Shown piece after piece: positions 1 through 23,159 of a stretch of DNA of 23,159 nt. This DNA comes from Mantamonas sphyraenae STR306 (lineage: Eukaryota; Protista; CRuMs): assembly GCA_026936335.1 (NCBI GenBank), contig JAPMXV010000066.1, positions 1-23,159 of the forward strand, in the 5' to 3' direction. The notes under the pieces are model-generated. The model was not told the DNA's origin. It saw nothing but the letters and a program-made list of their open reading frames with translations, and did no database searches. Numbering within the stretch: position 1 is the stretch's first letter; each line of letters begins with the position of its first letter. A program made the position numbers and the translations under genes.

Positions 1-3000
1 TGTTCGCGTCGAGCACGTGACGGGCGTTTGGAAATCAGCTGCTGAGGACTGCAGGTCGCATGACGTTTTGTGGCTGAAACATTTGGGGAACGGTCGGTTG
101 GATTCGGATACCTTGGAGCAAGCATGGCTTTCCGCGTCGATTCTACTTCATCACGGACGGGAATTGCTGAGATTCTGGGCTCGCACGACGTGAGCAAGAT
201 CCAGGAGCACTTGATCAAGCTGTTGAAAACGTGAAGCGGCTGACGTTTGGCACGGGCCGCAACGCCAGAGATGATCATGGGCGTCGAGAGCCAGCGAGCA
301 GAGGTGCTTCCGTTCCGACACCAGGTGCAGGTGGAGGGGCATGGTGGAGTACTGGATGAACAACGTGGAGGACGAAATGCGCAAGACGCTTCACCAGGTG
401 ACGAAAGAGGCAATCTTCTACTACCAAAAGAGCGAGCGCGTGGAGTGGTTCCTGAACGAGGCGTACCCTGCGATGAGCACGCTTGTGGGATCGCAGATCT
501 GGTGGACGTGGGAGGTGGAGGATGCGTTCCGGCAGGTGCGCCAGGCAACAAGCTGATGATGAAGCAGCTGAATGCACGTCTGCACGGCCAAATCGACGAT
601 CTGGTGGACCTTGTGCGCACGGACATCACAAGCAAGCAGTCGCAGAAGGTGAACCGCAAATCATCATCGACGTGCACGCCCGGGACGTGATCGAAGGCTT
701 TGTGCGAGACAGCATCCTGGACGAGCGGATTTGAGTGGGAGTCGCAGCTGCGTTTTCTACTGGAACCGAGGACTGGACGATATCCAGATCCGACAGTGCA
801 CGGGCCTCGTTCGGGTTCGGGTACGAGTACACGGGCCTGAGCGGGCGACTTGTGATTACGCCGTTGACGGACAGGTGCATCATGACGCTGACGCAAGCGT
901 TGTCCATGTTCAAGGGCGGATCGCCAGCGGGGCCGGCAGGCACGGGCAAGACGGAACGGTGAAGGACCTGGCCAAAACGATGGGTCTACGCTGCGTCGTG
1001 TTCAACTGCGGTGAGGGCCTGGACGTGGAGGCGATGGGGAGCATGTTCAGCGGTCTGGCGCAGACGGGCTCGTGGGGCTGCTTCGACGAGTTCAACCGCA
1101 TCGAGCCGCAGGTGCTGTCTGTGATTTCGACGCAAATCGCGAAATCCAGCAGGCGCTGATGCACAGGTACACGCAGTTTCCGTTCCAGGACCGAGAGATC
1201 CGACTGAATCACAGCGTGGGCATTTTCGTGACCATGAACCCTGGATACGAGGGCGCACGGAGCTGCCGGACAACCTGAAGGCGCTGTTCCGGCCCGTGGT
1301 GATGGTGGTGCCGGACATGGAACAGATTTGCGAGATCATGCTGTTTTCGCAGGGATTCAGCAGCGCCAAGGTGTTGTCAAAGAAGATGACGGTGCTGTAC
1401 AAGCTTGCGCGCGAGCAACTGAGCAAGCAGAACCACTACGACTTTGGTTTGCGTGCGCTGCGAAGCTGCTCGTGATGGCGGGTGCGCTGAAGGCGGTCGT
1501 CGCCCGAGTACAGCGAGGAAGCTGGTGTGATGCGCGCGCTGCGCGATATGAACCTGCCCAAGTTTGTGTTTGAGACGTGCCTCTGTTCCTGGGTCTGATT
1601 GCAGACCTGTTCCCGAAGCTGGATTGTCGCGTGTGCGCTACCCCGGTCTGCACGACGCCGTGGAAGGCGCGCTTGCAGAGCGCGGCCTGCAGGTGCTGTC
1701 CGAACAGGCGTTGACAAGACGATCCAGGTGTACGAGACGATGCTGACGCGCCACACAACCATGGTGGTGGGGTCCGACGGGAGGGGGCAAGACTGTCGTG
1801 CTGGAAACGCTTCAGCGCGCGCAGACGGCTCTGGGCTTGCATACGAAGCTGATTGTGCTCAACCCAAAGGCGGTGACGCTGCAGGAGCTGTACGGACGGC
1901 TGGACAAGAACACGCGCGACTGGACGCCCGGATTGCCTGTCGTATCTGTTCAAGGAGATGAACAAGCCGCTGATTGGAGACAAGAAGGAGGCGCGGTACA
2001 TGGTATTCGACGGCGACGTGGACCCCGTGTGGGTGGAGAACATGAACAGTGTGATGGACGACAACAAGCTTGCTCACGCTGCCGAACAGCGATAGGATTC
2101 TGCTTCAGGACCACTGCAAGCTTCTGTTTGAGGTGGCGCACCTGAAGTTTGCGTCGCCTGCAACGGTGTCGCGATGTGGCATGGTGTTTGTGGATCGCGG
2201 AACATGGGGTGAAGCCGTACTTCAAGACGTGGCTGGGCAGGCGCAACAACAAGAGCGAGGCCGAGGTGCTCGGGGCGTTTTTCGACAAGTACGTGAGCGC
2301 GTGCGTCGACTACGTGACGGAGGGCATCTTGGAAGGAATTGTGACGAAGAAGCTGCGCACAATCATCCCGTACACGCGGATGAACATGATGCGACAGCTG
2401 TGCACGCTGTTGGAGTCTGTGCTGGACCATCAGGAGCGCGCGGTGACGGATCCGAGCAGCCTGGAGGCGGTGTTTATCTTTTGCGTGATCTGGTCACTGG
2501 GTGGAGCGCTGGTGGAGGAGTCGCAGGTGAAGTTTGATGCGTTTGTGAAGAAACTGTCGGATCTGGTGATTGTGGACAACCCGGACCTGACGGTGGGCAC
2601 GGGTCAGCTGCCTGCGGCCCTGCCGACGCTGTACCAGTACTACTTTGACGTGAAAGTGAACAAGTGGATCCCGTGGGGCGACATGGTGCAGCCGTTCATG
2701 GCGCCCGAGGACGGCAAGTTTTCGTCGATCCTGGTGCCGACGGTGGACACGGTGCGCTACACGATGCTGATGGACATGGTGATGCGCACGCAGCAGCCGA
2801 TGCTGTTTGTGGGTGAGACCGGAACGGCCAAGTCGTCGATTACGCAGAAGTACATGAGGGGCCTGGACAGCGACCGATTCCTGACGCTGACGATGAACTT
2901 TAGTTCGCGCACGACGGCGCAGGACGTGCGCAACACCATCCAGGAGCCTCTGGAGAAGAAAACGCGCGACACACTGGGCCCGCCTGTGGGACGCATGCTT

Positions 3001-6000
3001 GTGACGTACGTGGACGACCTGAACATGCCGAGTGTGGACAAGTACGAGACGCAGCAGCCGATTGCGTTGCTGCGTCTGCTGATTTCGCGAGGCGGGTTCT
3101 ACGAGCGTGGCGAGCAGATCTTTTGGAAGAAGCTGCAGGACCTGCTCTTCCTGGGCTCCATGGGCCCTGCAGGCGGAGGGCGCAACGCAGTGGACCCCCG
3201 GTTCATCTCGCTGTTCAACGTGTTTAGCATCACGTTCCCGAGCGACCAGTCGCTGACCAAGATCTACACGAGCGTGCTGAACCACCACCTGCTGTCGTTC
3301 CCGGACGGGCTGCGTGACCTGTCGCGTGAGCTGACGTCGATGACGCTGAAGCTGTACCGAGCTGTTGTGCAGCACCTGCCACCGACGCCGAGCAAGTTCC
3401 ACTACATCTTCAACCTGCGCGACTTGTCGCGCGTGTACGAAGGTCTTTGCCTGAGCCGGCCGGATTCGTTCGACGGCGTGGAGCAGTTTGTGCGCCTGTG
3501 GCGCAACGAATGCCTGCGCGTGTTCCATGACAGGCTGATTTCTGTGGAGGACCGGCAGTGGCTGAACGACAAGATCGGACAGCTGATCAAGCACTACTTT
3601 CCGCGAGAGGCGGTTGGGGCACTGGAGGATCCGATCCTGTTTGGTGACTTTGACCAGGCGCTGGAGAGCGAGGATGCGCGTGTGTACAAGGACCTTGTGG
3701 ATCACGAGAGCGTGCGCAACCTGTTTATGGAGGTGCTGGAGGACTACAACGACCACCACCGCAAGATGGACCTTGTCCTGTTTGACCAGGCGCTGGAACA
3801 CCTTGTGCGCATCCACCGGATCATCCGCATGCCACGCGGCAATGCGCTCCTTGTGGGCATTGGTGGGAGCGGCAAGAGGAGCCTGACGCGCCTGGCGACG
3901 CATGCAGCTGGGTACGAGCTGTTCCAGATCACGCTGACACGCAACTACACGGAGGAGTCATTCCGTGAGGAGCTGAAGACGCTGTACAAGAAGCTCGGCG
4001 AGGAGGACAAGCAGGTGACGTTCTTGTTTACGGACAACGACGTGGTGCACGAGGAGTTTCTGGAGCTGGTGAACAACATGCTGACGAGCGGCATGGTGCC
4101 TGCGCTGTTTGCGGACGACGAGCGTGAAGCGTTGATCAGTGGGATCCGGTCGGAGGTGATCAAGCGCAACATCTTTGACACGCGCGAAAACTGCTGGAAC
4201 TACTTTGTGAACAAGTGCCGAGACAACCTGCACATTGTGCTGTGCATGTCGCCAGCAGGAGAGATGCTGCGGCAGAGGTGCCGCAACTTCCCCGGACTGG
4301 TGTCGAACACGGTGATCGACTGGTTCTTCCGCTGGCCCGAGACAGCGCTGCGTGCGGTGGCTGAGCACATGTTGGCGGAGGAGGACCTTCCGGAGCGCTT
4401 CCGAGAGGACATTGTGTCGCACATGGTGCTGACACACGAACGTGTGACGGAGCACTGCGCCGAGTTTGAGGCGGAGCTGCGACGCAGCAACCACGTGACG
4501 CCAAAGAACTACCTTGACTACCTGCACGGATACATGGGCCTGTTGAAGAAGCACCGAAAGAAGCTGGGAGAAGAAGCCAAGTTCCTGGACGACGGCCTGC
4601 GCGCGCTGATTCTGGCTGCACAGGAGGTGGAGGTGATGAACACGGAACTTGTGAAGAGCAAGGCGATTGTGCACCAAAAGAAGCTGGCGTGCGACGAGTT
4701 GCTGGCCAAAATCACGGAGCGAAACGCAAAGACCAAGGAGAAGCAGCTGGCGGCGAGCGAGAAGGAAGCGGAGCTTGAGGAGACGCAGCGCAGGGTGTCT
4801 GAGGAGAAGGCAGAGGCGGAAGGCCAGCTGGCAGACGCGATGCCAGAGCTGCTGGAGGCACAGGAGCTGCTGCAGAACTTGCCGCGCGAAAAGATCGTGG
4901 AGATTCGGTCGTACTACAACCCGATGCAGCAGATCCGGGACGTGTGCATCTGTGTTGTGATTCTGCGCGGGTTCAAGGACCACACGTGGAAGGGAGCCAA
5001 GGCGATGATGACGAGTCCGTCCTTCCTGCAGGACCTGCTGAACTTTGACGCGGAGACGCTGACGTCAAACAAGATGAACAAGGTGAAGGAGATCTTTTCG
5101 CAAATCGGGTCGCGCAGCGAGGTGGAGAGCATTTCGAGCGCAGGTGTTGCGCTGTATGATTGGGTCAAGTCGATGATCAACTTTTACTCGGTGATGCGAA
5201 ACGTGGCGCCGAAGCGTGAACGTGTGCAGGCGAAGGAGAAGGATCTGAAGCGCGCGAACAAGGAGCTGGAAAAGATCAAGATGGACGTGGCTGCACTGAG
5301 CGACGAGCTGATGAAACTGGGTGAGCTGTTTGCGGGCCAGACGGCAGAGCAAATGGAGCTGAAGGCGCGTGCGGAAGAGATGGAGGCGCACTTGACGGCA
5401 GCAAAGAAGCTGATCAGTGGGCTGGGCACGGAGCGGTCGCGCTGGACGGACGACCTGGCAGAGACGAAGCAGCGACGCGAGCGACTTGTGGGAGACAGCC
5501 TTGTGGCGGCGGCGTTCCTGAGCTACGCGGGCCCGTTCTCACACGAGTTTAGGAAGCGCATGCTTGAAGGGGAGTGGGTGCCGGACGTGATTGGGCGAGA
5601 GATCCCGATTACGGCGGACTACACTGTGGAGGCGCTGCTGACGGACGACGTGGAAGTGTCGCGTTGGTCGTCGCAAGGACTGCCGCCGGACGAGCAGAGT
5701 GTGCAGAACGGCATCCTGGTGACGCAGTCGACGCGTTGGCCGCTTTGCATCGACCCGCAGATGCAGGTGGTAGAGTGGATCAAGAAGATGGAGGGAAGTG
5801 CGCTGCATGTGACCACGTTTGACGACGGGGACTTTTTGCGCGCGCTGGAGTATGCGATCCAGTATGGGCGGCCGTTCCTGATTGAGGGTGTGGACGACGC
5901 GGTGGATCCCGTGATTGAGCCTGTGCTGGAGAAGGACATCAACGTGATTGGCAACAAGCGGTTCATCAACCTGAACGACAAGGACATCGACTGGGATCCT

Positions 6001-8961
6001 GCGTTCCGGCTGTACATGACGACCAAGGTGGCGAACCCTGCGTACAACCCGGAGCTGTTTGGAAAGACGGCTGTGGTGAACTGCTGCGTGACGCCGGATG
6101 GACTTGCAGAGCAGCTGCTGAGCGTGGTGGTCGGGTACGAGCGCAGCGACCTTGAAAAGTCGCGCACGAAACTGATCCAGGAAACGAGTGAGAACAAGGG
6201 CAACCTGAAGCGTCTGGAGGACACACTGTTGCGAGAGCTGGCACACTACGACGACGGGCGCAAGATGTTGGACAACACGGAGCTGATCGAGACGCTGGAG
6301 GACGCCAAGAGCAAGGTGGTGGAGATCAGCGAGAAGCTGGAGCAGGGACGACGCACAGCGAAGGACATTGAGGCGGTACGCAACGGGTACAAACCCGTGG
6401 CGAAGCGAGGCAGCATCTTGTTTTTCGCAATGAGCTCGCTGAGCGCGATGAATCCGATGTACGAGTATTCGCTGAACGCGTTTGTGGGCGTGTTTGAGGC
6501 GTCGCTGCGCGGGTCGAAGAAGGACACGATCCTGCAGACGCGGTTGATGTACATCATGGACACGCTGACGCGCAACGTGTACAAATACGTGTGCACGAGC
6601 CTGTTTGAGGAGCACAAGCTGACGTTTTCGTTCCAGATGGCGGTGATGATTCTGGAAGGCCGCGGCGGGATGGTGCGTTCGGAGCTGGAGTTTTTCCTGA
6701 AGGGCAATGTCAAGGTGGGCGGCAGCAGTTCGAGCTCGGGAAGCACAGGGCAGGTGGAAGGAGGCAGCAGCAGCAGCAGCAGCAGCAGCAGCGGCGAAGG
6801 GTCGCTGTCGGAGCTGGAGCGCGTGTCGTGGGTGGAAAAGAAGAGCTGGGAGGATCTGATGGCGTTGGGAGAGCTGGGCGGGGTGTTTGAAGAGGTTGTT
6901 CGGGGCGTGGCGGACCGTGGGAACGAGGCAGTGTGGATGGAGTGGTACCAGGACGCGACGCCCGAGGTGAAGAACCTGCCGCTTGGCCTGCACAGCAAGC
7001 TGAACCGGTTCCAGCAGCTGTGTGTGTTGCGTTGCTTCAGGCACGACCGCGTGGTGGTTGCGGTGAAGAATTTCATCACGACGACGCTGGGTGAGCAGTA
7101 CATCAACCCGATCCAGTCGTCGATTGACGACATCTTCCAGCAGAGTACGGCGACATCGCCGGTGGTGTTCATCCTGAGCCCCGGAGCTGATCCTGCAGCG
7201 GACATCTTCAAGCTTGGAGAGCAGCGTGGAATGGTGGGCAACACAAAGATTCGTCACCGTGCTCTGGGAGAAGGGCAGGAGAAGGCGGCGAAGCAGCTGA
7301 TTGAGATGGGGATCTCGCGTGGACAATGGGTGATCCTGATGAATTGCCATCTGCTGACGAGCTGGCTGAAGCCGCTGGAGAAGCTGCTGACGGAGAAGCT
7401 TGCGGAGAAGCCGAACCCAGACTTCCGGCTGTGGTTGACGACGGAGCCGACGGAAAAGTTCCCCGTGGGCATCCTGCAGCGGTCGCTGAAGGTGGTGACG
7501 GAGCCGCCGAATGGGCTGCGGCAGAACATGGAGCAGAGCTACTCGAGGATCACGGACGAGGATCTGGAAGAGTGCCCGCACTGGGCGTTCAAGCCACTGG
7601 TGTATGTGCTTAGCTTCTTCCACGCTGTGGTGCAGGACAGGCGCAAGTACGGAAAGATTGGGTGGAACATCGCGTACGACTTTAACGAGAGCGACTTTTC
7701 GACGTCGCTGACGCTGCTGAACACGTACCTGAGCAAGGCGCACGGGAACAAGGAGTCAGCGATTCCGTGGAACTCGCTGCGGTACTTGATTGGCGAGGCG
7801 ATGTACGGAGGTCGTGTGACGGACGACTTTGACCGACGTGTCCTGATGACGTACCTGAACGAGTACATGGGCGACTTTTTGTTTGACACATTCCAGCCAT
7901 TCCGGTTCTTTGAGAACGAGGAGGAAGGTCTGGTGTTCAAGGTGCCGGAGGACGGGCCGCGGGAAAACTATGTGACGGCGATCGAGGAGCTGCCGCCGAC
8001 GGACACGCCTGAGGTGTTTGGGCTGCACCCGAACGCAGAGATTGGATACCTGACGTCGTCGTCGCGACAACTGTGGCGAGACATGTTGAGCATCCAGCCA
8101 CGCACGACGTTGGGTAGCGGTGGGATGTCGCGGGAGACGTTCATCCTGGGCACGACGCATGAGCTGATGCAAAAGATTCCGGAGGAGTTTGATTTGCAGC
8201 GCATCGGAAAAGCGCTGGGAGACGAGCTGACGCCGAGCCAGGTTGTTTTGCTGCAGGAGCTTGCGCGATGGAACGCTCTGGTGAAGAAGATGAGCGTGAC
8301 GCTGCGTGACCTTGAGCGTGCGCTGAACGGCGAGATTGGGATGAGCATTGAGCTGGACGAACTTGCGACGTCGTTGTACAACGGACAGCTGCCGCGCAGG
8401 TGGCAAGAGCTGGCACCGTACACGGAAAAGTCGCTTGGTGGCTGGATGGCATACTTTGACCAGAGGTATCAGCAGTACCTGAGCTGGATCGAGAAGGGAG
8501 AGCCTGTGGTGATGTGGCTGTCGGGCCTGCACGTGCCGGAGGCGTATCTGACGGCGCTGGTGCAGGCGGGTTGCAGGCGACACGGGTGGCCGCTGGACAA
8601 GAGCACTCTGTTTACGCAGGTGACGGATTATCGGGAGGCGGATGAGATCACGGCGCGACCGGAGGACGGGTGCTACATCCAGGGCCTGTACCTGGAGGGA
8701 GCGAGCTGGGACCGGGAGCGCGGGTGCCTTACGGCGCAGCGAAACAAGGTACTTGTGGAGGAGTTTCCGATTGTGCAGGTGGTGCCCATCGAAGCGAGCC
8801 GACTCAAGTTGCACAACACGATTCGCACGCCTGTGTACGTGACGCAGCAGAGGAGGAATGCGATGGGAGTCGGGTTGGTGTTTGAGGCGGATATCCCGAG
8901 CCAGGAGCACGAGAGTCTGTGGGTGTTGCAGGGAGTGTGTCTGGTGTTGAACACGAATTGA
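1..8961 (+). CDS. DNAH10: Axonemal dynein heavy chain, inner arm I1/f alpha type (DNAH10 / Chlamydomonas DHC1-like); 5'-truncated, with frameshifts in ~1-2200
   Basis: AAA1 P-loop GPAGTGKTE (~930-957), [16 protein letters not shown] and [10 protein letters not shown] are spread over shifted frames. An uninterrupted ORF follows to TGA at 8961, with P-loops GETGTAKS and GIGGSGKRS, a stalk coiled coil, RWPLCIDPQ and [12 protein letters not shown]. The C-terminus [13 protein letters not shown]...[11 protein letters not shown] is typical of DNAH10. No introns seen. Confidence 0.93.
6766..6792 (+). repeat. (AGC)9 microsatellite encoding poly-Ser within a Gly/Ser insert of dynein
   Basis: Direct reading of the sequence; part of [29 protein letters not shown]. 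Confidence 0.95.
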
Positions 8962-10574: not shown

Positions 10575-12698
10575 TCACATCATGCCGCCTGCACCCGGGT
10601 AGCCGCCCTGCTGTTGCTGCTGGGGAGTGAGCTTGATCATGTCGTCGATGCGGAGGATGGTGATGGCGGCCTCGACGGCAAACTCAAAGCTCTTGAGCTT
10701 GCTCATGGTCGGCTCGACGACACCGCGAGCGACGTTGTCGACGACATCGCCCTGGATGAGGTCCAAGCCGTAGCGGAGATACTTCTTGTCGTCGTCGTTG
10801 TCTTTCTGGGCGAGGTGGTGGAGACCGAGAAGGGTGGAGACTAGGTCCATGCTGTCCTGGGCGGCGTTGACAGCGAGGGTCTTGGGGATGACAAGGAGAG
10901 CCTGGGAGAACTCATAGACGGCGAGGGCTTCGCGGGTCTTGAGGATGGAGGCGTAGCTCTCGAGGTGGACGGAAAGGGCCGTCTCGACTGCGCCGCCGCC
11001 AGGGACGATACGCTTGGACTCAAGGGTGCGCTGGACAACGCACATGGCGTCGTGCAGACTGCGGTCCATCTCGTCGAGAACCATGCTGTTGGGACCGCGG
11101 AGGATGATGGAGGAGGCGCGAGTGTTTGCGCAGCCCTTGATGAGGATGAGCTCATCGTCGGAAACGCGCTCCTGGCAGACCTCTTCGGCGGCGCCGAGGT
11201 CCTCGGGGTCAAACTCTTCGTCGCCCTCCATGGTGGCAAGGGAGGTGACAAGGCGGCCGCCGGTGATCTTTGCGATGCGCTTGAGGTCGTCGCGCTTGCA
11301 GCGGCGGACGCCCATGACACCGTTGTCGACCATGTACTTGAGGACGAGGTCGTCGATGCCCTTGGTGGTGAGGATGACGTTTGCGCCTGCGTTGATGATC
11401 ATCATGACGCGGTCCTTGGCCATGTCGAGTTCCTTCTGCTTGATCTTCTCGAGCTGCTCGACGTCCTCGAGCTCGACCTTGATGCCCATGGCGAGGCGGC
11501 CCTTGTTGAGGTTGAAGTCGACGCAGGCGATCTTTGCGTCGGCGATGCGCATGGGCATGAGCTGGGAAGCGACGGTGCAGTTGAGTGCAAAGCCCGGAAC
11601 AACGAAGCTCTCCTTCATGGACTTGCCGTGGGATTTGAGGACGTTGACGCTCTTGACTGGGTAGATGGTGTCGCCCATGTAGTTGATGCGCTTGACGCGT
11701 GTGATTGCGTCGTAGCAGACGTTTGCCCAAAAGTCGCTGCTGGTGTTGCCGAGGACCTTTGAGCTGAGGGAAGTGGTGGCAGCCTGGAGGAGGACGTCCT
11801 TGTCGTCTTCGGTGATGTCCACCGAGAGGTTTTCGGCAATGAATTTCTTCACCTGCTTGAGAGCCATGCGGTAGCCCTTGATGACGCTGGTGGGGTGAAT
11901 CTGCTTCTTGACGAGCTCGTTGGCGCGCTTGAGGAGCTCTGCGGCGAGGATGACGACGGAAGTTGTACCGTCGCCCGACCTCGGTGTCCTGCAGACCGGC
12001 AAGCTCGACGAGGATGCGTGCAGCCGGGTGCTCGACGTCGAGCTGCTGGAGGATGGTGGCACCGTCGTTGGTGATGAGGACATCTCCGATGTCGTCGACA
12101 AGCATTTTGTCGAGGCCGACGGGGCCGAGGGAAGTCTTGACAATGTTTGCAATGGCTAGGCAGGCGGTGACTGGGAGGAGATCAGAGCGGGATCAGGAAT
12201 TCGCATTTGCAGGCGGGGAGTGTGCGAGGGAGCGGGTCAGTGGAGGGCGGAGGACGTGGATGTGGCGGTTGGGTGGGAGTGGGAACAGCGGGTGGGGGAG
12301 AGGGGTGGGAGGTTGGGAAGGTGTGGGGCGTGCGGGAGGCGGAGGAAGGAGGAAGGAGAGGGTGCTCAGAACGGGAGCAAACGGCCAGAAACGGCAGGGC
12401 GGACGGGAGTGCACAGGGCAGAGGGACAGGGCAGCATGTGCAGGAACAGGGGCGAGCGAGACAGGAAGGCGGAGGGATGGGTGGGGAGGGCGTGGGGTGG
12501 CGTGTGGAAGAGGATGGGGCTGTGGACGGAAAAGTGGCGCCAAAATGTGGAGGCGAAGCACGCATGGGATCGCGGGCGGGGCTACGGAGAGGAGGGAGGG
12601 AGGGAAGGAACATGGAGGAGGCACATACCGTTCTGCGTGCGCACGTCCTGGCCATGGGTGCGTTCTCCGTTGACACCGGCGATGGAGGTAGAGGACAT
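10575..12698 (-). CDS. TCP1: T-complex protein 1 subunit alpha (CCT-alpha); exons 12698-12629 and 12170-10575; one apparent 1-nt insertion near 11974
   Basis: Spliced N-terminus [54 protein letters not shown], then [25 protein letters not shown] and [15 protein letters not shown]. The GQDVRTQNV and [15 protein letters not shown] motifs indicate the alpha subunit. Confidence 0.96.
12171..12628 (-). other. Spliceosomal intron of TCP1, 458 nt
   Basis: AACG|GTATGT donor and CTCCCAG|TCACC acceptor. Splicing restores the conserved QN-V-TA. Confidence 0.92.
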
Positions 12699-12762: not shown

Positions 12763-15036
12763 ATGCTTGTGCTTTTCGAGAACCCCGCGGGCTTTGCCGT
12801 GTTTAAAGGTGTGTGCCGCCGCAAGGAAAGGGGAGAGAGGGTGGTGGAGGAGCGGCTGGTGTTAAGGGGCTTTGCTGGGGTGCGCGGACTGACACCTGTG
12901 TGCGTGTGCTTTTGCGCTGCAGTGGACGACGATGTTGTGAGCGAAGTGAAGGATCTGCACAAGGAGTTTGCAGATGTGGAGTCTGCCAAGTCGATGTGAG
13001 TTTGGCAGGGAATGGGAAGGAATGGAAAGGGGGTTGTGGGCGGCTGAGCACATGCACGGGCCTGGGTAGGTGGGAACGGGGGCCTAACGATGGACTGCGT
13101 ACGCGTGCACACACCACAGGATCAAGCTGCACAAGTTTATGAAGTTTGAGGACACGACAGAGGCTCTGGCGGCGACGACGGCGCTTGTGGAGAGCGAGCT
13201 GAGCAAAGGCTTGAAAAAGTTTCTCAAGTCGGCCCTGAAAGGCGAGGACGGGTCGGTGCTGGCTGTGGCAGACGCCAAGCTGGGCAAGCAGATCAACGTG
13301 AGTTTGGCGGGTGGAGGGAGGGCGGAGGAGAGGCGTTGAGACGGGACCGGGGAGTGGGCAGTGGGCAGTGGGCGAGGGGACGGAGAGCGGGAGACGGTGA
13401 AAAGAGGGGATGGAGGGGAAGGAAGGCGTTGGAGGAAACGGGTGTGGGGAGGGGGCAGGAGGGGAGCGAGGCAGGGAGAGGAGGAGAGAGTTGATGGAGA
13501 CATGGGGAGGGCTGGGGCAAGGGTGCATGGTGAGAGAGGAAGCAGGGGCATGTGGGAGTGCCTTGGGGGCGGGAGTCGTGTGGGACGGAAATCGCATGCA
13601 GGGTCGGCGTGCAAAGACCCGCGGCTGCGTGGATGTGGAGAGGGGTGTTGTGGAGAGAGACGGGGCAAAGAGGGAAAGCTGACACGGCATGTGCGCACGG
13701 ATGATTGCAGAAGAAGCTGGGGATTGAGATTGCACACGGAGACGCGGTGAACGAGCTGATGCGTGGAATCCGTTCGCAGCTGGCTGGGCTGCTGGGAGCC
13801 AAGGGAGCGAGGGCCAGCTGTCTGCTATGTCGCTGGGTCTGTCGCACTCACTGTCGCGTTACAAGCTGAAGTTTTCGCCGGATAAGGTGGACACGATGAT
13901 TGTGCAGGCAAATCAACCTGCTCGACGACCTGGACAAGGAGCTGAACACGTACTGCATGCGTGTGCGCGAGTGGTACGGGTGGCACTTTCCGGAGGCAAG
14001 CAAGATTGTGACGGATAACATCCAGTACGCCAAGATGATCCTGAAGATGGGCAACCGCAGCAACTGCCAGGAGACGGACCTGTCGGACGTGCTTCCGGAG
14101 GACATTGAAACGGAGCTGAAGGCGGCGTCGATCATCTCGATGGGATCGGAGGCGGCGGAAGAGGACATCAGCAACATCCAGGAGCTGAGCGAGCAGATTG
14201 TGAGCATCTCCGAGTACCGCAACCAGCTGTCGGAGTATCTGAAGAACCGCATGAACGCAATTGCGCCGAACCTGACGGTGCTTGTGGGAGAGCTTGTGGG
14301 TGCGCGTCTGATTGCGCACGCGGGATCGCTGATCAACCTGGCAAAGCAGCCTGCGAGTACGGTGCAGATTCTGGGCGCGGAGAAGGCGCTGTTTAGGGCG
14401 TTGAAGACGAAGCACGAGACGCCGAAGTACGGACTGATCTACCATGCGTCGCTGGTGGGCCAGGCGGCGCCAAAGAACAAGGGCAAGATGTCGCGTGTGC
14501 TCGCGGCCAAGGCGGCGCTGTCTGTGCGTGTGGACGCGCTGGGAGACAAAGACGAGCCGACGATTGGGTTGGAGGACCGGGAAAAGGTGGAGCAGAGGCT
14601 GGAGGCGCTGGAAGGACGAAGCCTCAAGTCGATCAACGCCAACGCCATCAAGGTGAAGGGGGCGTTTGACTACGGCACAGGCATGGCCAAGGGGGCCTAC
14701 GACGCTGCTGGAGACAGCACGTTGGAGGGCAAAGCGAAGGGGGGCAAGAAGAGGAAGCGCGAGGAAAGCGAGGACGAGGCAGAAAGCGACGAGGAGGACG
14801 CCGATGAGGATGAGGAGGAGGAGGAGGAGGTGAAGACGCCCAAGAAGAAGAAGGCAAAGAAGGAGAAGAGCTCGAAGAAGAAGAGCGACAAGAAGAAGAA
14901 GAAGAAGAAGGGCAGCGAGGATGATGATGAGGAGGAAGGAGGCAGCAGCAGCAGCAGCAGCGGGAAGAAGGAGAAGAGCTCAAAGAAGAAGAGCGACAAG
15001 AAGAAGAAGAAGAAGAAGAAGAGCAGTGATGAGTGA
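12763..15036 (+). CDS. NOP58: Nucleolar protein 58 (box C/D snoRNP); exons 12763-12808, 12923-12995, 13120-13297, 13711-15036; apparent indels near 13805 and 13910
   Basis: [58 protein letters not shown] (NOP58-type rather than NOP56), [41 protein letters not shown], and a Lys-rich charged tail. Confidence 0.96.
12809..12922 (+). other. NOP58 intron 1, 114 nt
   Basis: G|GTGTGT donor, branch ACTGACAC, CTGCAG acceptor; frame restored (FK-V-DDD). Confidence 0.85.
12996..13119 (+). other. NOP58 intron 2, 124 nt
   Basis: AT|GTGAGT donor, branch CCTAAC, CACAG acceptor; gives KS-M-IKLHKF. Confidence 0.9.
13298..13710 (+). other. NOP58 intron 3, 413 nt, G/A-rich
   Basis: AAC|GTGAGT donor, branch GCTGACAC, TTGCAG acceptor; gives LGKQIN-KKLGI. 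Confidence 0.9.
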
Positions 15037-16947: not shown

Positions 16948-19115
16948 ATGTCGGGAAAGAAGGACGAGAAGCAAGGGCAAGGGCAGGGAAAGGGCGTCCA
17001 AGACCTGGGCCTGCTGCCGGACGGCTCGACATTTGTGGTGCCGGTTGTGGAGGACGTGACGGCGACGCTGAAGCATCCGTCGAGGTGGTCGCTGCCTGTG
17101 GTTGTGACGCTGGCGTTGTCTGCAATGCATGTGGCGACTCTGTTTATGGACCTGCCGCGGTGGGTGTACATCGGGCTGTTTTTGATCTGGCGCATCGGGT
17201 ACAACGTGGGGCTGGGCTTCCTGCTGAGCTGGCAGTCGAAAGAGCAGAAGCTGACGCGATACATGGCGTCGTTTGCGGAGAAGGGCAAGCGGGGCTGGGT
17301 GGAGCGGCTGCTTGTGTGGATTGTGGAGGACCACATGCGGCGTGTGAACGACGGCGCAGCGTATTCGTTTGATGTAAGGAATGCCGGGAAAGCGGAAGTC
17401 GGGGGAATGGGCGCTTGGAATTGCGGCTGACACGTCACGGGCGCCGAATTTAGGCCAATCCGGCACAACTGAATGCATGGCTGCTGTTCCGCCACCTGGC
17501 GGACATCTGCTTGGTGAACGACTTTACCGCATTTGTGGTGTTGTCCCTGGCATCCATCCAGGTGCCCGAGCCATTCACGTTCCTTGATGCATGCGGCTAC
17601 GTGGGCGGAGTACTGCTGTGCTACGGCGGCTGGTGGGCCAAGGTGGATGCAGCACGCAGGATCGGGTCGTTTGCGTGGTGTAGGTTTGCGCAGAGAGAGT
17701 GTGGCGCTGGCGGAGCGGGAGTCGGGGAAGGGGTTGGGGGGCCATTTGCGGCTGGGAGAGTGGGGCGCTGACGCGGTTGGGGCACAGACTGGGGCGATTT
17801 TTTCTTTCTCAAGGCAGGAACGTTTGAATTGTGCAACGAGGGCGTGTTTGGTGAGTGTGGGGTGGGGTGGGGCCACGAGGGAGCGGGAGGAGTGAGGCGA
17901 GGGAGGATTATTTGCTGACACTCTGCTGGCAGCTCTGGCACCCCATGCGATGTACGGGCTGGGTAAGTTGTGGAAGGAAGGTGTGTGTTGAAGTGGGGTG
18001 AGGCTAACACATGCGTGTGGGGCATCACAGGGTACATCTGGTGCTACGGGGCGTGCCTAATTGCTCGCTCGACGGGCCTGGCGTTTGTGGCACTGGGGAT
18101 GCATCTGATGCAGGGACTGTTTCTGGTGTTTACCGAGCAGCCGCATATCCAGAGGACGTACGGCACGGACGAGGATGAGGCGGACGCAAAGGAAGCGGCT
18201 GCGGAAATGGACGAGTACTTCAAGCAGGACGTGCTGGTTCGTCATCAGCTTCCGTACCGGTCGACACATATTCTGATGGGCATCCTGGTGATCTACCAGG
18301 TGATGTTGTTTGCGACCAACTCGACGTCGCGCCTGTTCTGGCTGTTGCACGCAGTGGTGTGGCAAATTGTGCACAGCGTGGGGCTGGGATGGGTGCTGCA
18401 TGCACAGAGCACGTCGCAGATCATCTCGAAACGCTTTGAGGCGGCAGGACTGGGCCTGGCGGAGGCGTATCAGGCATGGCAGGCGGTGTACAGTGTGGTG
18501 TCGCTGAGCTGCGCGTCGAGCGCAGTGGCAGTGGCAATCAGCCACTACGAGTTTCCAGAAGCGCTGGACAGCGGGTGGCTGCTGCGACAAATCATAGGAC
18601 TGATTCTGGTTGGCGTGCACTTTCTGGTGAACATGGAGGTGATCGACGTGCTCGGAGAGAGGGGCGTGTTTTACGCGGACATCTGGCTGTCGCACATCCC
18701 GCACCCTCTGGTGTACAAGGGCATCTACCACTGGTTGGATCACCCGGCGGCGTCCCTCGGGTACGCGGGGTACTACGGGCTGGCTGTGGCGTCTGGGAGT
18801 GCACACGCACTGGCGCTGGCGGTAGGGTCGCAGCTGCTGCATTGCTGGCTGATCATTTTGGTGGAGACGCCGCATTTGCAGCGCACACGGCAAGAGGAGC
18901 TGCGTGTGCGGGGCAGCACGGCTGCAGAGGTGAGGAAGCTGGCACAGAAGAGCCCCGTGTTGGCGCAGGTGATTGACAAAACGGACAAGGCGATTGACAA
19001 GGCGATTGACAAGGTGCGTGCTACGGTGTTGGATGGGTTTGAGTTGCAGGAGGATGGGAAGAAGGGGAAGGGGAAGGGGAAGGGGAAGGAGAAGGAGAAA
19101 GGAAAGAAGGATTGA
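16948..19115 (+). CDS. CHO2: Phosphatidylethanolamine N-methyltransferase, CHO2/PEM1-type with two PEMT domains; exons 16948-17373, 17454-17679, 17788-17850, 17933-17962, 18031-19115
   Basis: The spliced product has GLLPDGSTFVVP, WRIGYNVGLGFLLSWQS, NAWLLFRHLADICLVNDF, WWAKVDAARRIGSFAWYWGDFFF, GVFALAPHAMYGLGY and EQPHIQRTYG. A second copy reads GVFYADIW...GIYHWLDHP...VETPHLQR. These match fungal Cho2 motifs. Four GT-AG introns (17374-17453, 17680-17787, 17851-17932, 17963-18030) each have a CTRAC branch site. Confidence 0.88.
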
Positions 19116-19150
19116 AGGTGAGGTGAGGTGAGGTGAGGTGAGGTGAGGTG
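19116..19150 (+). repeat. (AGGTG)7 microsatellite immediately after the CHO2 stop codon
   Basis: Direct reading of the sequence. Confidence 0.95.
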
Positions 19151-19185
19151 GGTGAGTGGGGAGGATGTGTGAATGAAAGGATGGT

Positions 19186-21570
19186 TCATTCGATGCGCTG
19201 GCGTTTGGAGGAGGAGGAGGAGGAGGAGGAGGAGGAGGAAGGGTCTTTGCGCTTGGGCAGGGTGAAGGCGGGGATGGGGTAGGCGTTGACGAGTGCGACG
19301 GTGGTAGGGCGGGTGGTGATGTGGGGTGTGATGCGGTCGATGAGGGTGTGGAGGAGGGTGTGCAGTGTGGTGTCGTTGGGTTTGGGGTTGTCGAGCCAGG
19401 CGATCTTGAGGGAGAGGGAGGTGACGCCGCGGGTGACGGTGTGGCTGATGGCACCTTTTACATGATTGTAGGTGAGTTGAGGCCTGAGGAGGCGGAGAAA
19501 GAAGGCCAGGTCGACAGGCGGCACGGGAACGTTGCCCAGCGCCAGGATGATGTGTCGCACCAGGGACGGCAAGCTGCCGTTGTTGATCAGCTCACGCAGT
19601 GCCTGGTGCTTGTGTGCGTGCTGATGGCGAGGGTGCTTGGCTGCGCGTGCCTTCATGTGTGCCAGGAGCGTCTGGAACTCCCGCGCCGTGCAGCTGCCAC
19701 GCTCGTCGCTGGGCGAGGCTTTGCTCCAGCCACTGCGCACAGACTCAGGGTGCCACTTGTGCACCTCGGCGGTGGTGAGGTGGTGGTCGTAATCGCATTG
19801 TGTCCAGTGTGGGTCGCTTTCGTTGTCAGCAGGGCGTCGTGCTTTCTGGAGCCACAGCTGGGTCTGCTTGTGCTCCTCCCAGGTGCTGGGATGTGTTCTG
19901 TTGCCGAGAGTGTCCATCTCTGTCATGAGCAGGTGGAGGAGGGCGTAGTTGGGGTCGCCGTGGTCATGTGGCTCCTCCAGCCAGCACACCTTCAACTCAG
20001 CCTTTGTCACACCCATGGCCAGACCAGCGTGGATGATGGCATGGCTGCATGCATGTCGATCCATATCACAGCCGAGGAGGGTGAGGCAGAAGGCCATGTC
20101 GCCCTGGGAGAGGGGAATGTTGCCCAGAACGAGCTGAATCTGTCGGACCAGCGTCAGCAGGGTGCCATGGCAGACCACAACACGCGCTTGCAGGGTCGTC
20201 AGGTCGGGGATGTCGTCGAAAGGATGCTCATTGGCCAGAGTGTGCATGTGCTTCAGCAGTGCCGTATGCTCCTTCATGTTGCTGTGGCTGCGCTCGCTCT
20301 TGCGCCACTGCGTCCAGCCACTGCGCACAACGCCATCTGGCAGTCCATCCTCCACAGCCATATTCTCCTCCTCTGTTGGCTCGGCAAGAACAAGCTCGGT
20401 GATGCGGAGGGCGTTGATTGCATCGGTGGTGGTGGGGCGGGTGGTGATGTGGGGTGTGATGCGGTCGATGAGGGTGTGGAGGAGGGTGTGCAGTGTGGCG
20501 TCGCTGGGTTTGGGGTTGTCGAGCCAGGCGATCTTGAGGGAAAGGGAGGTGACGCCGCGGGTGAGGGTGAGGCCGATGGCATTGCGTACCTGCTGGTAGG
20601 TGAGACGTGGCCTGAGGAGGCGGACAAAGAAGGCCATGTCGACAGGCGGCACGGCAACGTTGCCAAGCGCCAGGATGATGTGTCGGAGAAGGGACTTCAG
20701 GCTGCCGTTGTTGATCAGCTCACGCAGTGCCTGGTGTTCGTGTTCGTGCTGATGGCGAGGATGCTTGGCTGCGCGTGCCTTCATGTGTGCCAGCAGCGTC
20801 TGGAACTCCCGCGCCGTGCAGCTACCACGCTCGTCGTTGGGATTGTGCGCTGCCCAGCCACTGCGCACAGACACAGGATGCCACTCTTCCACCTTGATGG
20901 TGGTGAGGTGGTGGTCGTAGTCGCATTGTGTCCAGTGTGGGTCGCTGTCGTTGTCAGCAGGGCGTCGTGCTTTCTGCAGCCACAGCTGGGTCTGCTTGTG
21001 CTGCTTCCAGGTGGTGGGATGAGGTCTGTTGCCGAGAGTGTCCATCTCTGTCATGAGCAGGTGGAGGAGGGCGTAGTTGGGGTCGCCGTGGTTGTGTGGC
21101 TCCTCCAGCCAGCATACCTTCAACCCAGCCTTTGTCACACCCATGGCCAGACCAGCGTTGGGGATGGCAAGTCTGCACGTCTGTTGATCCATATCGCGGC
21201 CGAGAAGGGTGAGGCAGAAGGCCATGTCACCCTGGGAGAGGGGAATGTTGCCCAGAGCGAGCTGAATCTGTCGGACAAGCGCCAACAGGGGGCCATGGCA
21301 GACCACAACACGCGCCTGCAGGGTCATGAGGTCGGGGATGTCGTTGATGGGATGCTCATTGGCCAGAGTGTGCATGTGGTTCAGCAGTGCCGTGTGCTCC
21401 TCCTTGTTGCTGCGGCTGCGCTCGCAATGATTTCCACCAACTGCCCACCCTTTGCGCACAACACCACCTGGCAACTTGTTCGTCTTGTTCATGCCTGCAT
21501 TCTTCCGTGCGCCGGTGTCTCCGTTCTTGGCACTCCTTGCCCGTGTGCTCGACGTTCCTGTCGGTGCCAC
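19186..21570 (-). CDS. Unknown protein with four related ~190-aa helical modules (A-B-A'-B'); first in-frame ATG at 21492, or the 3' part of a gene starting at 22772
   Basis: 794-codon ORF. Shared module signature: VRxGW...ER...E..LLxHM..A..HP...LxRxIxLxLGN...DxAF..LL...AI...GVT..LKxxWL..P. Some differences between copies are synonymous on this strand (e.g. GAT/GAC). C-terminus PKRK-polySer-KRQRIE. Confidence 0.82.
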   Translation of the reverse strand: MAPTGTSSTRARSAKNGDTGARKNAGMNKTNKLPGGVVRKGWAVGGNHCERSRSNKEEHTALLNHMHTLANEHPINDIPDLMTLQARVVVCHGPLLALVRQIQLALGNIPLSQGDMAFCLTLLGRDMDQQTCRLAIPNAGLAMGVTKAGLKVCWLEEPHNHGDPNYALLHLLMTEMDTLGNRPHPTTWKQHKQTQLWLQKARRPADNDSDPHWTQCDYDHHLTTIKVEEWHPVSVRSGWAAHNPNDERGSCTAREFQTLLAHMKARAAKHPRHQHEHEHQALRELINNGSLKSLLRHIILALGNVAVPPVDMAFFVRLLRPRLTYQQVRNAIGLTLTRGVTSLSLKIAWLDNPKPSDATLHTLLHTLIDRITPHITTRPTTTDAINALRITELVLAEPTEEENMAVEDGLPDGVVRSGWTQWRKSERSHSNMKEHTALLKHMHTLANEHPFDDIPDLTTLQARVVVCHGTLLTLVRQIQLVLGNIPLSQGDMAFCLTLLGCDMDRHACSHAIIHAGLAMGVTKAELKVCWLEEPHDHGDPNYALLHLLMTEMDTLGNRTHPSTWEEHKQTQLWLQKARRPADNESDPHWTQCDYDHHLTTAEVHKWHPESVRSGWSKASPSDERGSCTAREFQTLLAHMKARAAKHPRHQHAHKHQALRELINNGSLPSLVRHIILALGNVPVPPVDLAFFLRLLRPQLTYNHVKGAISHTVTRGVTSLSLKIAWLDNPKPNDTTLHTLLHTLIDRITPHITTRPTTVALVNAYPIPAFTLPKRKDPSSSSSSSSSSSKRQRIE
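19300..21475 (-). repeat. Direct tandem duplication with a ~1.13-kb period (copies ~20428-21475 and ~19300-20344)
   Basis: Long near-identical blocks are offset by 1128-1131 nt; for example GTGGTGATGTGGGGTGTGATGCGGTCGATG occurs at 19313 and 20441. Confidence 0.95.
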
Positions 21571-21590
21571 TGCCAGCCGTGACCCTGCGC

Positions 21591-22772
21591 CTACGCTGTC
21601 CGCTGCCTTTCCTCTGTTGGGGGAGCAGTAAGACGACTGTTTTGGCCTCTGCGTCGTCGTCTGTGCCCTCTACTTGTGCGTTTTGGCTGCCATTCGTCCG
21701 TGTCCTCCTGCTCCATGTCGTCTGCGTCGTCGTCGCTGTCATCTTGCGGCATGCACTCCTCATCCATGGCATCACCAGTGTCTGCAAAGCTGAGTGCGCC
21801 CTGAGTGTCCAACTCGTCGTCCACGTGCTGCTGGGTTGCGTCGTTTGCCTCGCCGTCTCTATCGTACGCCTCCATCCCTGAGCTGGTCATCCACTGTGAG
21901 TTGCTGGAGATTGACCGTGGTTCACGGTGGCCAAAGTCCAGGAACATCAGGTCTTCCACGTCGCCAGTGTCATGTGTGTGTGTGTCCTGGTCTGCGTCGT
22001 CGTCGTCGCTGTCTCCAGTCTGCCGTGTGGCCTGGTGGGAGGAGGACGACGATGTGGTGGTGGACGTGGTCCGTGTGATGCCAACAAAGGCAGGGCTGAT
22101 GCGTTTGGGGACGCGGTTGTGGTTTGTGGTGCGTTGAGCAGGCGGAAGGTGCGACGGAGTCTGAGCGAAGTGCATCTGGCCGGTTTGTCGCGGCTGAGGA
22201 GGCGGCGGAGGAGGGTAGGCGTAGTATGGGTGGCCCTGGTGAGCATATGCGTAGTGCTGCTGGGAGTGGGTGTTGACAGGGACCCAGATGATGGGTGGTT
22301 GTGGGTGCTGGTACGGGTTTTGTACGCCAGGAACGGGCAGCATGTTCGGAAACGGCTGGGCAGCCATGGGAGGGACCATGTACGCGTAGCTGTGGGGGAG
22401 ACGGGGAGGGGCAGGGCGGGGTGTGAACGGTAAGCGGAAGGCGGAATGGACGGCGTCAGTGCAGAAGCGGGGAGAAGGGAGGCTGGAACGAGCAGAGAGG
22501 GGAAAACGAAGGAGATTGGCAGACGGGGAAACTGGCAACGGGGAGGGCAGTGACAGGGGAGAGGGGATCGGAGAAGAGCGGAGAAGGCAGCAACGGTGGT
22601 GATGGGGAAGTGGAGAAGCAGGGCAGGAGTGGAAGGAAGCGACAGAGGCATGGAGAAGGCAAGGAAGCGGGAAAAGCGGGCAGTCAGAAAACGGAGTGGA
22701 AGGCAGAACGCACGCTGGGTAGGTGTTGGGTGTGTGTTGTTGCTTCGGAGTGCTTGAGTAGTCTTTGTCCAT
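21591..22772 (-). CDS. Low-complexity Pro/Gln/Tyr-rich then acidic ORF; exons 22772-22714 and 22389-21591; probably the N-terminal part of the repeat-module gene
   Basis: ATG at 22772 (MDKDYSSTPKQQ). Putative intron 22390-22713 (GC|GTGCGT...CCCCACAG, 324 nt, pyrimidine-rich). Then AYAYMVPPMAAQPFP...YYAYPPPPPPQP, Asp-rich tracts and KRTSRGHRRRRR. Its end overlaps the open frame of the downstream ORF. Confidence 0.62.
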   Translation of the reverse strand: MDKDYSSTPKQQHTPNTYPACVLPSTPFSDCPLFPLPCLLHASVASFHSCPASPLPHHHRCCLLRSSPIPSPLSLPSPLPVSPSANLLRFPLSARSSLPSPRFCTDAVHSAFRLPFTPRPAPPRLPHSYAYMVPPMAAQPFPNMLPVPGVQNPYQHPQPPIIWVPVNTHSQQHYAYAHQGHPYYAYPPPPPPQPRQTGQMHFAQTPSHLPPAQRTTNHNRVPKRISPAFVGITRTTSTTTSSSSSHQATRQTGDSDDDDADQDTHTHDTGDVEDLMFLDFGHREPRSISSNSQWMTSSGMEAYDRDGEANDATQQHVDDELDTQGALSFADTGDAMDEECMPQDDSDDDADDMEQEDTDEWQPKRTSRGHRRRRRGQNSRLTAPPTEERQRTA

Positions 22773-23043
22773 GATGGTGGTGGTGGAACTGGAGTGTATG
22801 TGGATTGTGTTGGACAGGTGGAGGGAGTTGTGGGTGTTAGTGATACTTTGGTTGAAGGCGGACGGGCAGTGCTGACTGCGCGGCGTTACAGGACGGCGGC
22901 CACTCACCAGCAACATTTCCACTCCCACCCATTGCCCACTGCCCCAGGTCACCACGCAACTCAGCCACACCGCCAGCAATCACAAGCACAACTCACACAA
23001 ACTAGACCGGACTCACATCACAACCTAGACAGGGAAAAATGAC

Positions 23044-23159
23044 TTAGGGTTAGGGTTAGGGTTAGGGTTAGGGTTAGGGTTAGGGTTAGGGTTAGGGTTA
23101 GGGTTAGGGTTAGGGTTAGGGTTAGGGTTAGGGGTTAGGGTTAGGGTTAGGGTTTAGGG
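23044..23159 (+). repeat. Telomere, (TTAGGG)~19
   Basis: Terminal tandem TTAGGG with the G-strand running 5'->3' toward the end; two 7-mer variants (TTAGGGG, TTTAGGG). Confidence 0.99.

Follow-up and report, generated by a model that had tools for sequence, protein, structure and literature searches.

In a 23,159-nucleotide stretch of Mantamonas sphyraenae STR306 DNA (GenBank assembly GCA_026936335.1, contig JAPMXV010000066.1, positions 1 to 23,159; hereafter the window), the clearly coding gene nearest to the telomere lies on the minus strand, and its open reading frame (ORF) is about 1.5 kb from the TTAGGG tract. This ORF, referred to below as the target gene, is open over positions 19186-21570 on the minus strand, with 794 codons counted from a GTG; the coding sequence from the first ATG, which is codon 27, to the stop occupies 19186-21492 and specifies 768 amino acids (aa). 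The predicted protein is built of four tandem modules of two types in the order A1-B1-A2-B2, and the copies of each type differ most strongly in two short patches, an arm that follows a conserved GW and a helix that precedes a conserved GVT. Measured against the synonymous divergence elsewhere in the repeat, these two small elements per module have diverged beyond neutral expectation, and at the same positions in A and B.

The modules were delimited on the minus strand by alignment with one another and by tblastn against the window: A1 (aa 33-228; 20887-21474), B1 (aa 229-408; 20347-20886), A2 (aa 409-604; 19759-20346; 81% identical to A1), and B2 together with a C-terminal tail (aa 605-794; 19189-19758; about 80% identical to B1). 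An invariant V-R-x-G-W motif stands at the start of each (21445-21459, 20854-20868, 20314-20328, and 19726-19740, minus strand), and 47 alignment columns, with many G, W, P, and hydrophobic residues among them, were invariant across all four. The A and B types were about 32% identical, with a Smith-Waterman score of 182 versus 32 ± 4.6 for shuffled sequences. The two AB units, AB1 (aa 34-410) and AB2 (aa 411-786), form a direct repeat with an offset of 1128 nucleotides (nt), or 376 codons, and were 86.5% identical at the nucleotide level and 81% identical at the protein level. An old A/B duplication followed by a later (AB)x2 tandem duplication had been proposed in an earlier examination of the letters and their translations (hereafter the sequence-only reading), and this order of events is upheld by the two levels of identity, 32% versus 81%, and by a Smith-Waterman score above that of the shuffles. 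The AB-AB arrangement itself is the product of a 1128-bp tandem duplication, of a type typical of unequal exchange at chromosome ends. Tblastn of the modules revealed no second copy or paralogue elsewhere in the 23-kb window.

The modules differed in charge, with isoelectric points (pI) of 6.7 for A1, 6.0 for A2, 8.3 for B1, and 11.0 for B2, the last value including the basic tail. This tail carries a basic cluster resembling a bipartite nuclear localization signal (NLS), KRK followed by a poly-Ser run and KRQR (KRK-x13-KRQR; 19201-19254, minus strand), in which the poly-Ser run is encoded by a (GGA)11 microsatellite at 19207-19239. NLS-like motifs had been thought to flank the array on both sides; the C-terminal cluster is present, and the N-terminal basic stretch lies mostly upstream of the first ATG and may therefore be untranslated.

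Coding potential was assessed frame by frame. A GC content at third codon positions (GC3) of 0.71-0.80 and a positive codon log-likelihood were found in the target frame only, with a sharp onset at about 21540. Outside the patches, the ratio of nonsynonymous to synonymous divergence (dN/dS) between the AB copies was 0.46, significantly below 1 (Fisher p=0.002), and this purifying selection argues that the target frame is coding. The codon score of the target gene was 0.07 versus 0.42-0.66 in the housekeeping neighbours, which is explained in part by a strand-asymmetric G excess and by the location of most reference genes on the opposite strand. A 753-aa ORF on the plus strand (19321-21582), antisense to the target gene and codon-aligned with it, was rejected as the coding alternative, having a lower codon score and lower GC3; it exists as a shadow of the target gene because the target frame lacks TTA, CTA, and TCA codons. 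These sequence signatures indicate a real, intronless, lineage-restricted protein-coding gene.

Homology searches were made in collections that hold neither the source genome nor its relatives. Scans of the whole protein and of single modules against Pfam, NCBIfam, and PHROGs assigned no family, and the best matches of hmmscan against Pfam at E<=10 were unrelated families with E values of 0.012-3, below the cut-offs. Neither a profile nor the full protein matched any PDB sequence, no match came from 5.8 billion protein clusters searched with the full-length protein and with a core-module alignment (lengths of about 87-280 aa), and a four-module profile run against 1.84 billion representatives with no length filter gave zero matches at E<=0.001. 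The exact protein was absent from public assemblies by look-up, and DNA-level scans of viral, prokaryotic-genome, and metagenome contigs had no match. The family had gone unrecognised when only the letters were read, and the Pfam, PDB, protein-cluster, and DNA searches likewise named none; by these comparisons the protein appears to be an orphan whose family is unclassified.

The distribution of differences between AB1 and AB2 was analysed over 350 comparable codons, with two copies per module type. Amino-acid differences affected 63 of the 350 codons and were clustered, with an index of dispersion of 1.77 that was reached by none of 5000 permutations; synonymous changes were unclustered (index of dispersion, 0.71). 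The densest 36-nt window contained 18 differences, again unmatched in 5000 permutations. Eleven columns were variable in both the A pair and the B pair versus about 4.5 expected (Fisher p=0.0008), and this coincidence persisted among columns that are not conserved between A and B (p=0.016). Focal variability at two equivalent places per module, as described in the sequence-only reading, is thus borne out by the over-dispersion and by the coinciding A and B columns, and the residue strings quoted for it were located where they had been placed. In the four patches together, which were chosen after the data had been seen, 48 of 111 nucleotides differed (0.43) versus a neutral rate of 0.129 (binomial 3e-15), this rate being the proportion of differing synonymous sites (pS) outside the patches; over the rest of the repeat, the nucleotide difference was 0.078 overall. 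On these sequence figures, loss of constraint alone cannot yield the divergence of the patches. The hydrophilic linkers, namely, a His-rich stretch in B and a 45-residue tail in A, were nearly identical between the copies, and for this reason the patches are not merely the least constrained parts of the protein. Patch differences fell at codon positions 1, 2, and 3 in 19, 14, and 15 cases, respectively, which shows no codon-position signature, and their substitution spectrum was unbiased (14 A, 13 G, 12 C, and 9 T).

The arms and the helices appeared to have changed in different ways. The variable arm after GW reads AVGGNHC in A1 (21424-21444) and TQWRKS in A2 (20296-20313), and AAHNPN in B1 (20836-20853) and SKASPS in B2 (19708-19725), all on the minus strand. 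In these loops, A and B taken together, 72% of the nucleotides differed, which is the level of unrelated sequence, and nucleotide similarity was regained only with small indels (net change, -3 in A and 0 in B); because the alignment needs indels, the strings look like locally shifted reading frames arising from few events. The variable helix before GVT, also on the minus strand, occupies 21157-21198 in A1 and 20029-20070 in A2, with 7 of 10 core residues changed, and 20563-20595 in B1 and 19435-19467 in B2, with 0.5 synonymous differences (sd) versus 10.5 nonsynonymous differences (nd). For the two helix patches combined, pS was an ordinary 0.16 and the corresponding nonsynonymous proportion (pN) was 0.33, with an nd of 19.5 versus an sd of 2.5 (P=3e-5 against the neutral rate), and the nonsynonymous excess was limited to these two patches. 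The fixed positions, 1, 5, 8, 9, and 12, form one helical face, and all others vary, so that the hydrophobic positions noted earlier as constant do hold; in the A1/A2 pair, this buried face consists of C, A, and I. The hypervariability claimed for both places accordingly survives for the helices, which show the nonsynonymous excess, and for its GW-loop half, indels that shift the frame are a better explanation than substitutions under selection. Each patch keeps its frame and its length, bar one codon.

AlphaFold2 (AF2) models of modules A and B were built on the four-row alignment and had low confidence: module A had a predicted local distance difference test score (pLDDT) of 58 and a predicted template-modelling score (pTM) of 0.62, and module B had a pLDDT of 63 (59-63 over five models) and a pTM of 0.62. 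Both models contain a long first helix, three helices over LALGN, DMAF, and the variable helix, then the GVT..LK..WL segment, and a long final helix. The three consecutive helices span residues 63-73, 81-90, and 97-111 in A and 61-71, 79-89, and 95-106 in B, the last being the variable helix of module B, and the variable helix was predicted to be helical at a pLDDT of about 70-76. The arm after GW was modelled as disordered, and the V-R-x-G-W motif sits in the segment left disordered; its GW, placed in such a flexible arm, is loosely reminiscent of the GW motifs that bind Argonaute. In neither model was a beta strand or hairpin predicted. The module is thus predicted to be an all-alpha, unclassified domain of about 150 aa.

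The reading that we favour, tentatively and at a little short of an even chance, is that the target gene encodes a lineage-restricted, fast-evolving modular binding protein that is probably nuclear. Each module would be a putative binding unit, with a contact surface formed or bordered by the variable helix, on its exposed face, and by the adjacent flexible arm; the ligand could be a protein, a nucleic acid, or chromatin. The arm after V-R-x-G-W would change through frame-shifting indels in a flexible segment and the helix through nonsynonymous substitutions on its exposed face, and elsewhere the two AB copies may be kept alike by gene conversion. A nuclear location is suggested by the bipartite basic cluster at the C terminus, which would direct the protein there. 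The data are compatible with specificity being retuned module by module. A bolder version would have the module as a previously unseen helical recognition domain that draws its specificity from the exposed helix face and the arm after GW, in a gene belonging to a chromosome-end family that diversifies both elements by selection and conversion, with DNA, RNA, or protein as targets; we consider this combination quite improbable.

Several observations weigh against the modular binding protein. The dN/dS in the patches was 1.46 overall and about 2 in the helices, and it was not significantly greater than 1 when compared with the patches' own synonymous sites (Fisher p=0.48). Moreover, pS was raised in the patches (0.35 versus 0.13 elsewhere; p=0.011), an increase that stems from the loops and suggests complex mutational events, or older or imported segments, rather than selection alone. 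Purifying selection over the gene as a whole is weak (dN/dS, 0.46-0.7). Each module type exists in only two copies, and the choice of patches was post hoc. The structure models are of low confidence (pLDDT of 58 and 63), with the arm disordered, and the gene is a predicted coding sequence.

Many of the same observations would be expected if no retuning had occurred, which is a possible, though unlikely, explanation and the one that otherwise fits best. The patches would then be mutational hot spots or indifferent segments of a young, weakly constrained orphan, shaped by slippage indels with compensating frame shifts and by multinucleotide events, and their coincidence in A and B would reflect the tolerance of the same fold. 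Such an origin is in keeping with loops that need indels and resemble shifted frames, with the lack of a codon-position signature, with the raised pS and the nonsignificant dN/dS of the patches, and with the weak overall constraint. It sits poorly with the helix patches, in which pS is normal and pN is twice the neutral rate, with the other hydrophilic and probably exposed stretches, which have barely changed, and with the retention of frame and, bar one codon, of length in every patch.

It is more doubtful that the target gene is a mosaic member of a multicopy chromosome-end family, in which the islands were imported by short gene conversions or represent old divergence that was never homogenised, in the manner of antigen-like families at subtelomeres. 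The islands do differ at 43% of their nucleotides, synonymous sites included, versus 8% in the background, the gene adjoins the telomere, and duplication and exchange are especially frequent at subtelomeres (PMC2684829). These points are countered by the lack of a second copy in the 23-kb window and of any relative in the protein or DNA collections, none of which holds the source genome. A related and more general pattern is that duplicated genes under concerted evolution can keep selected islands of divergence. The target gene resembles such cases in its low, even divergence, interrupted by brief stretches in which divergence is very high, synonymous sites included; it differs in being represented by two copies with no outgroup, in which conversion tracts are not demonstrable.

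The sequence-only reading had placed the modules among winged helix-turn-helix (HTH) domains similar to H15 or HARE-HTH, with the variable helix as the recognition helix of a DNA-binding array, possibly telomeric, of module-specific preference. This assignment is not supported and is improbable, although, with models of such low confidence, a three-helix HTH-like core may still be present. The resemblance lies in three consecutive helices of HTH-like spacing in both models, the third with variable residues on its exposed face, in the C-terminal NLS-like cluster, and in the segment after GVT, where the alignment shows a beta-strand-like alternation of hydrophobic and polar residues. On the other side, hmmscan of the whole protein and of each module against the HTH, H15, and HARE-HTH profiles of Pfam gave no match even at E<=10, and the PDB sequence searches were empty. 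The check by AlphaFold and Foldseek that had been proposed showed three helices of HTH-compatible spacing, and it returned neither a beta wing nor a structural match: the would-be wing, GVT..LK..WL, had a pLDDT of <50 on the four-row alignment and was a helix in A and coil in B, and Foldseek of models A and B against the PDB, with these low-confidence models as queries, gave no match at E<=0.001 (best E, 0.5-1; template-modelling score, <=0.25), with GntR and Zur entries at noise level. Foldseek of model A against BFVD yielded noise only. In addition, the A modules, with a pI of 6.0-6.7, are not basic, and a module of about 150 aa with six to nine helices is twice the size of a winged helix. 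By comparison with common tri-helical HTH motifs, the conserved GVT..LK..W would be the likelier recognition helix, and the variable helix would be the one before the turn.

That the ORF is no gene at all, and arose by chance in GC-rich DNA or as the decayed remnant of a mobile or telomere-associated element, is very improbable: long spurious ORFs are common in the window (for example, antisense to PEMT and to the target gene), the codon score is low, and homologues are lacking, but purifying selection is seen in the target frame only, A and B are conserved at the protein level, coding potential starts sharply, the low codon score is in part an artefact of the GC skew, and Pfam found no transposase, reverse transcriptase, or recombinase domain in the target gene or the flanking ORFs, nor were terminal inverted repeats found, the only inverted repeat in an inverted-repeat scan being an 18-nt pair at chance level. 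A protein of a mobile or telomere-associated element was rejected as a candidate on the lack of such domains and terminal repeats and on the empty viral contig and BFVD searches.

Among known systems, the closest setting is that of subtelomeric orphan genes arising through tandem duplication. Enrichment of orphan and tandemly duplicated genes at subtelomeres is documented (PMC2684829; PMC6102362), examples being the orphans of Neurospora crassa (PMC2684829) and, more generally, fast-evolving subtelomeric genes (PMC6102362). The target gene shares with such orphans a telomere-adjacent position, the lack of homologues outside the lineage, head-to-tail duplication, and fast evolution or weak constraint; it differs from them in that the duplication took place within one reading frame, giving a four-module protein, and in that divergence gathers at two homologous spots in each module. 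TAL effectors with their variable di-residues, PPR repeats, and PUF repeats also consist of near-identical tandem units that differ mainly at a few defined positions, a likeness in which such positions could tune the recognition by each unit, but their units are 34-36 aa long, number 10-30, and have known folds and ligands, whereas the target gene has four units of 180-196 aa, of two old types, with part of the variation due to indels. A TALE-like coded repeat array was rejected, the four modules being long and the variation spanning 6-14 residues and including indels. The targets of diversity-generating retroelements likewise contain two near-identical repeats that differ in a short variable region; in the target gene, by contrast, the differences are not adenine specific and include indels, no reverse transcriptase lies nearby, and the host is a eukaryote. 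Mutagenesis of this type was rejected on the lack of adenine bias, on the indels, and on the absence of a reverse transcriptase domain from the neighbouring ORFs.

As it stands, the gene is chiefly an example of something seen often, namely, duplicated orphans that evolve fast beside telomeres. A less usual feature is its faster-than-neutral change at the same two spots in both of its module types, which parted long ago. At the sequence level the pattern is clean and statistically supported in what appears to be a true orphan, yet its basis is a single pair of copies for each module type. Should the focal divergence stem from selection on a binding surface, the gene would contain a new protein domain whose specificity element is simple and readable, situated at a chromosome end of a barely sampled eukaryotic lineage, and it would show subtelomeres building new modular proteins via in-frame duplication.

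Between the target gene and the telomere lies a low-complexity ORF of 462 aa on the minus strand (21591-22979), with an N-terminal part rich in Pro, Ser, Thr, and His, followed by an acidic stretch and then an Arg run. Pfam gave no match for it, and its coding potential was weak. Its frame is not that of the target gene, and it ends 21 nt before the target ORF begins; a separate gene, a 5' leader, and a decayed exon are all possible identities. On the other side, the phospholipid methyltransferase (PEMT) gene (17970-19115, plus strand) is convergent with the target gene, and the 70-nt gap between their stops is filled by the microsatellites (GAAGGG)6.5 and (AGGTG)8.4 (19061-19156). Farther from the telomere are three more housekeeping neighbours, the CCT chaperonin gene (10578-12152, minus strand), the Nop58 gene (13900-15036, plus strand), and a dynein heavy chain gene represented by its C-terminal two thirds (2149-8961, plus strand). 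The dynein ORF runs for 2270 codons without interruption, from AAA3 to the C-terminal domain, and the N-terminal motor part falls outside it, either in a separate gene or upstream, past an intron or a stop. Scanning the window for Rfam families and tRNAs gave no matches.

The plus strand, which runs 5' to 3' toward the telomere, was G-rich over positions 1-23043 of the window, with a GC skew of +0.25. Skew at third codon positions was 0.33 for dynein (plus), 0.42 for CCT (minus), 0.33 for Nop58 (plus), 0.42 for PEMT (plus), and 0.30 for the target gene (minus), and the G excess of the window is a strand-asymmetric mutational bias that holds regardless of the direction of transcription. The best database relatives of the Nop58 protein were 53-72% identical, with none above about 72%, and came from scattered eukaryotes. 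In the Nop58 tree, the fungal, animal, and plant clades had strong support, and the window sequence stood outside them on a long branch, with a weak placement next to a haptophyte and a brown alga; in a source lineage so poorly sampled, an orphan gene is less of a surprise. The telomere tract itself, (TTAGGG)19 on the plus strand at 23044-23159, fills the end of the window and includes variant units, with TTAGGGG near 23128 and a terminal TTTAGGG.

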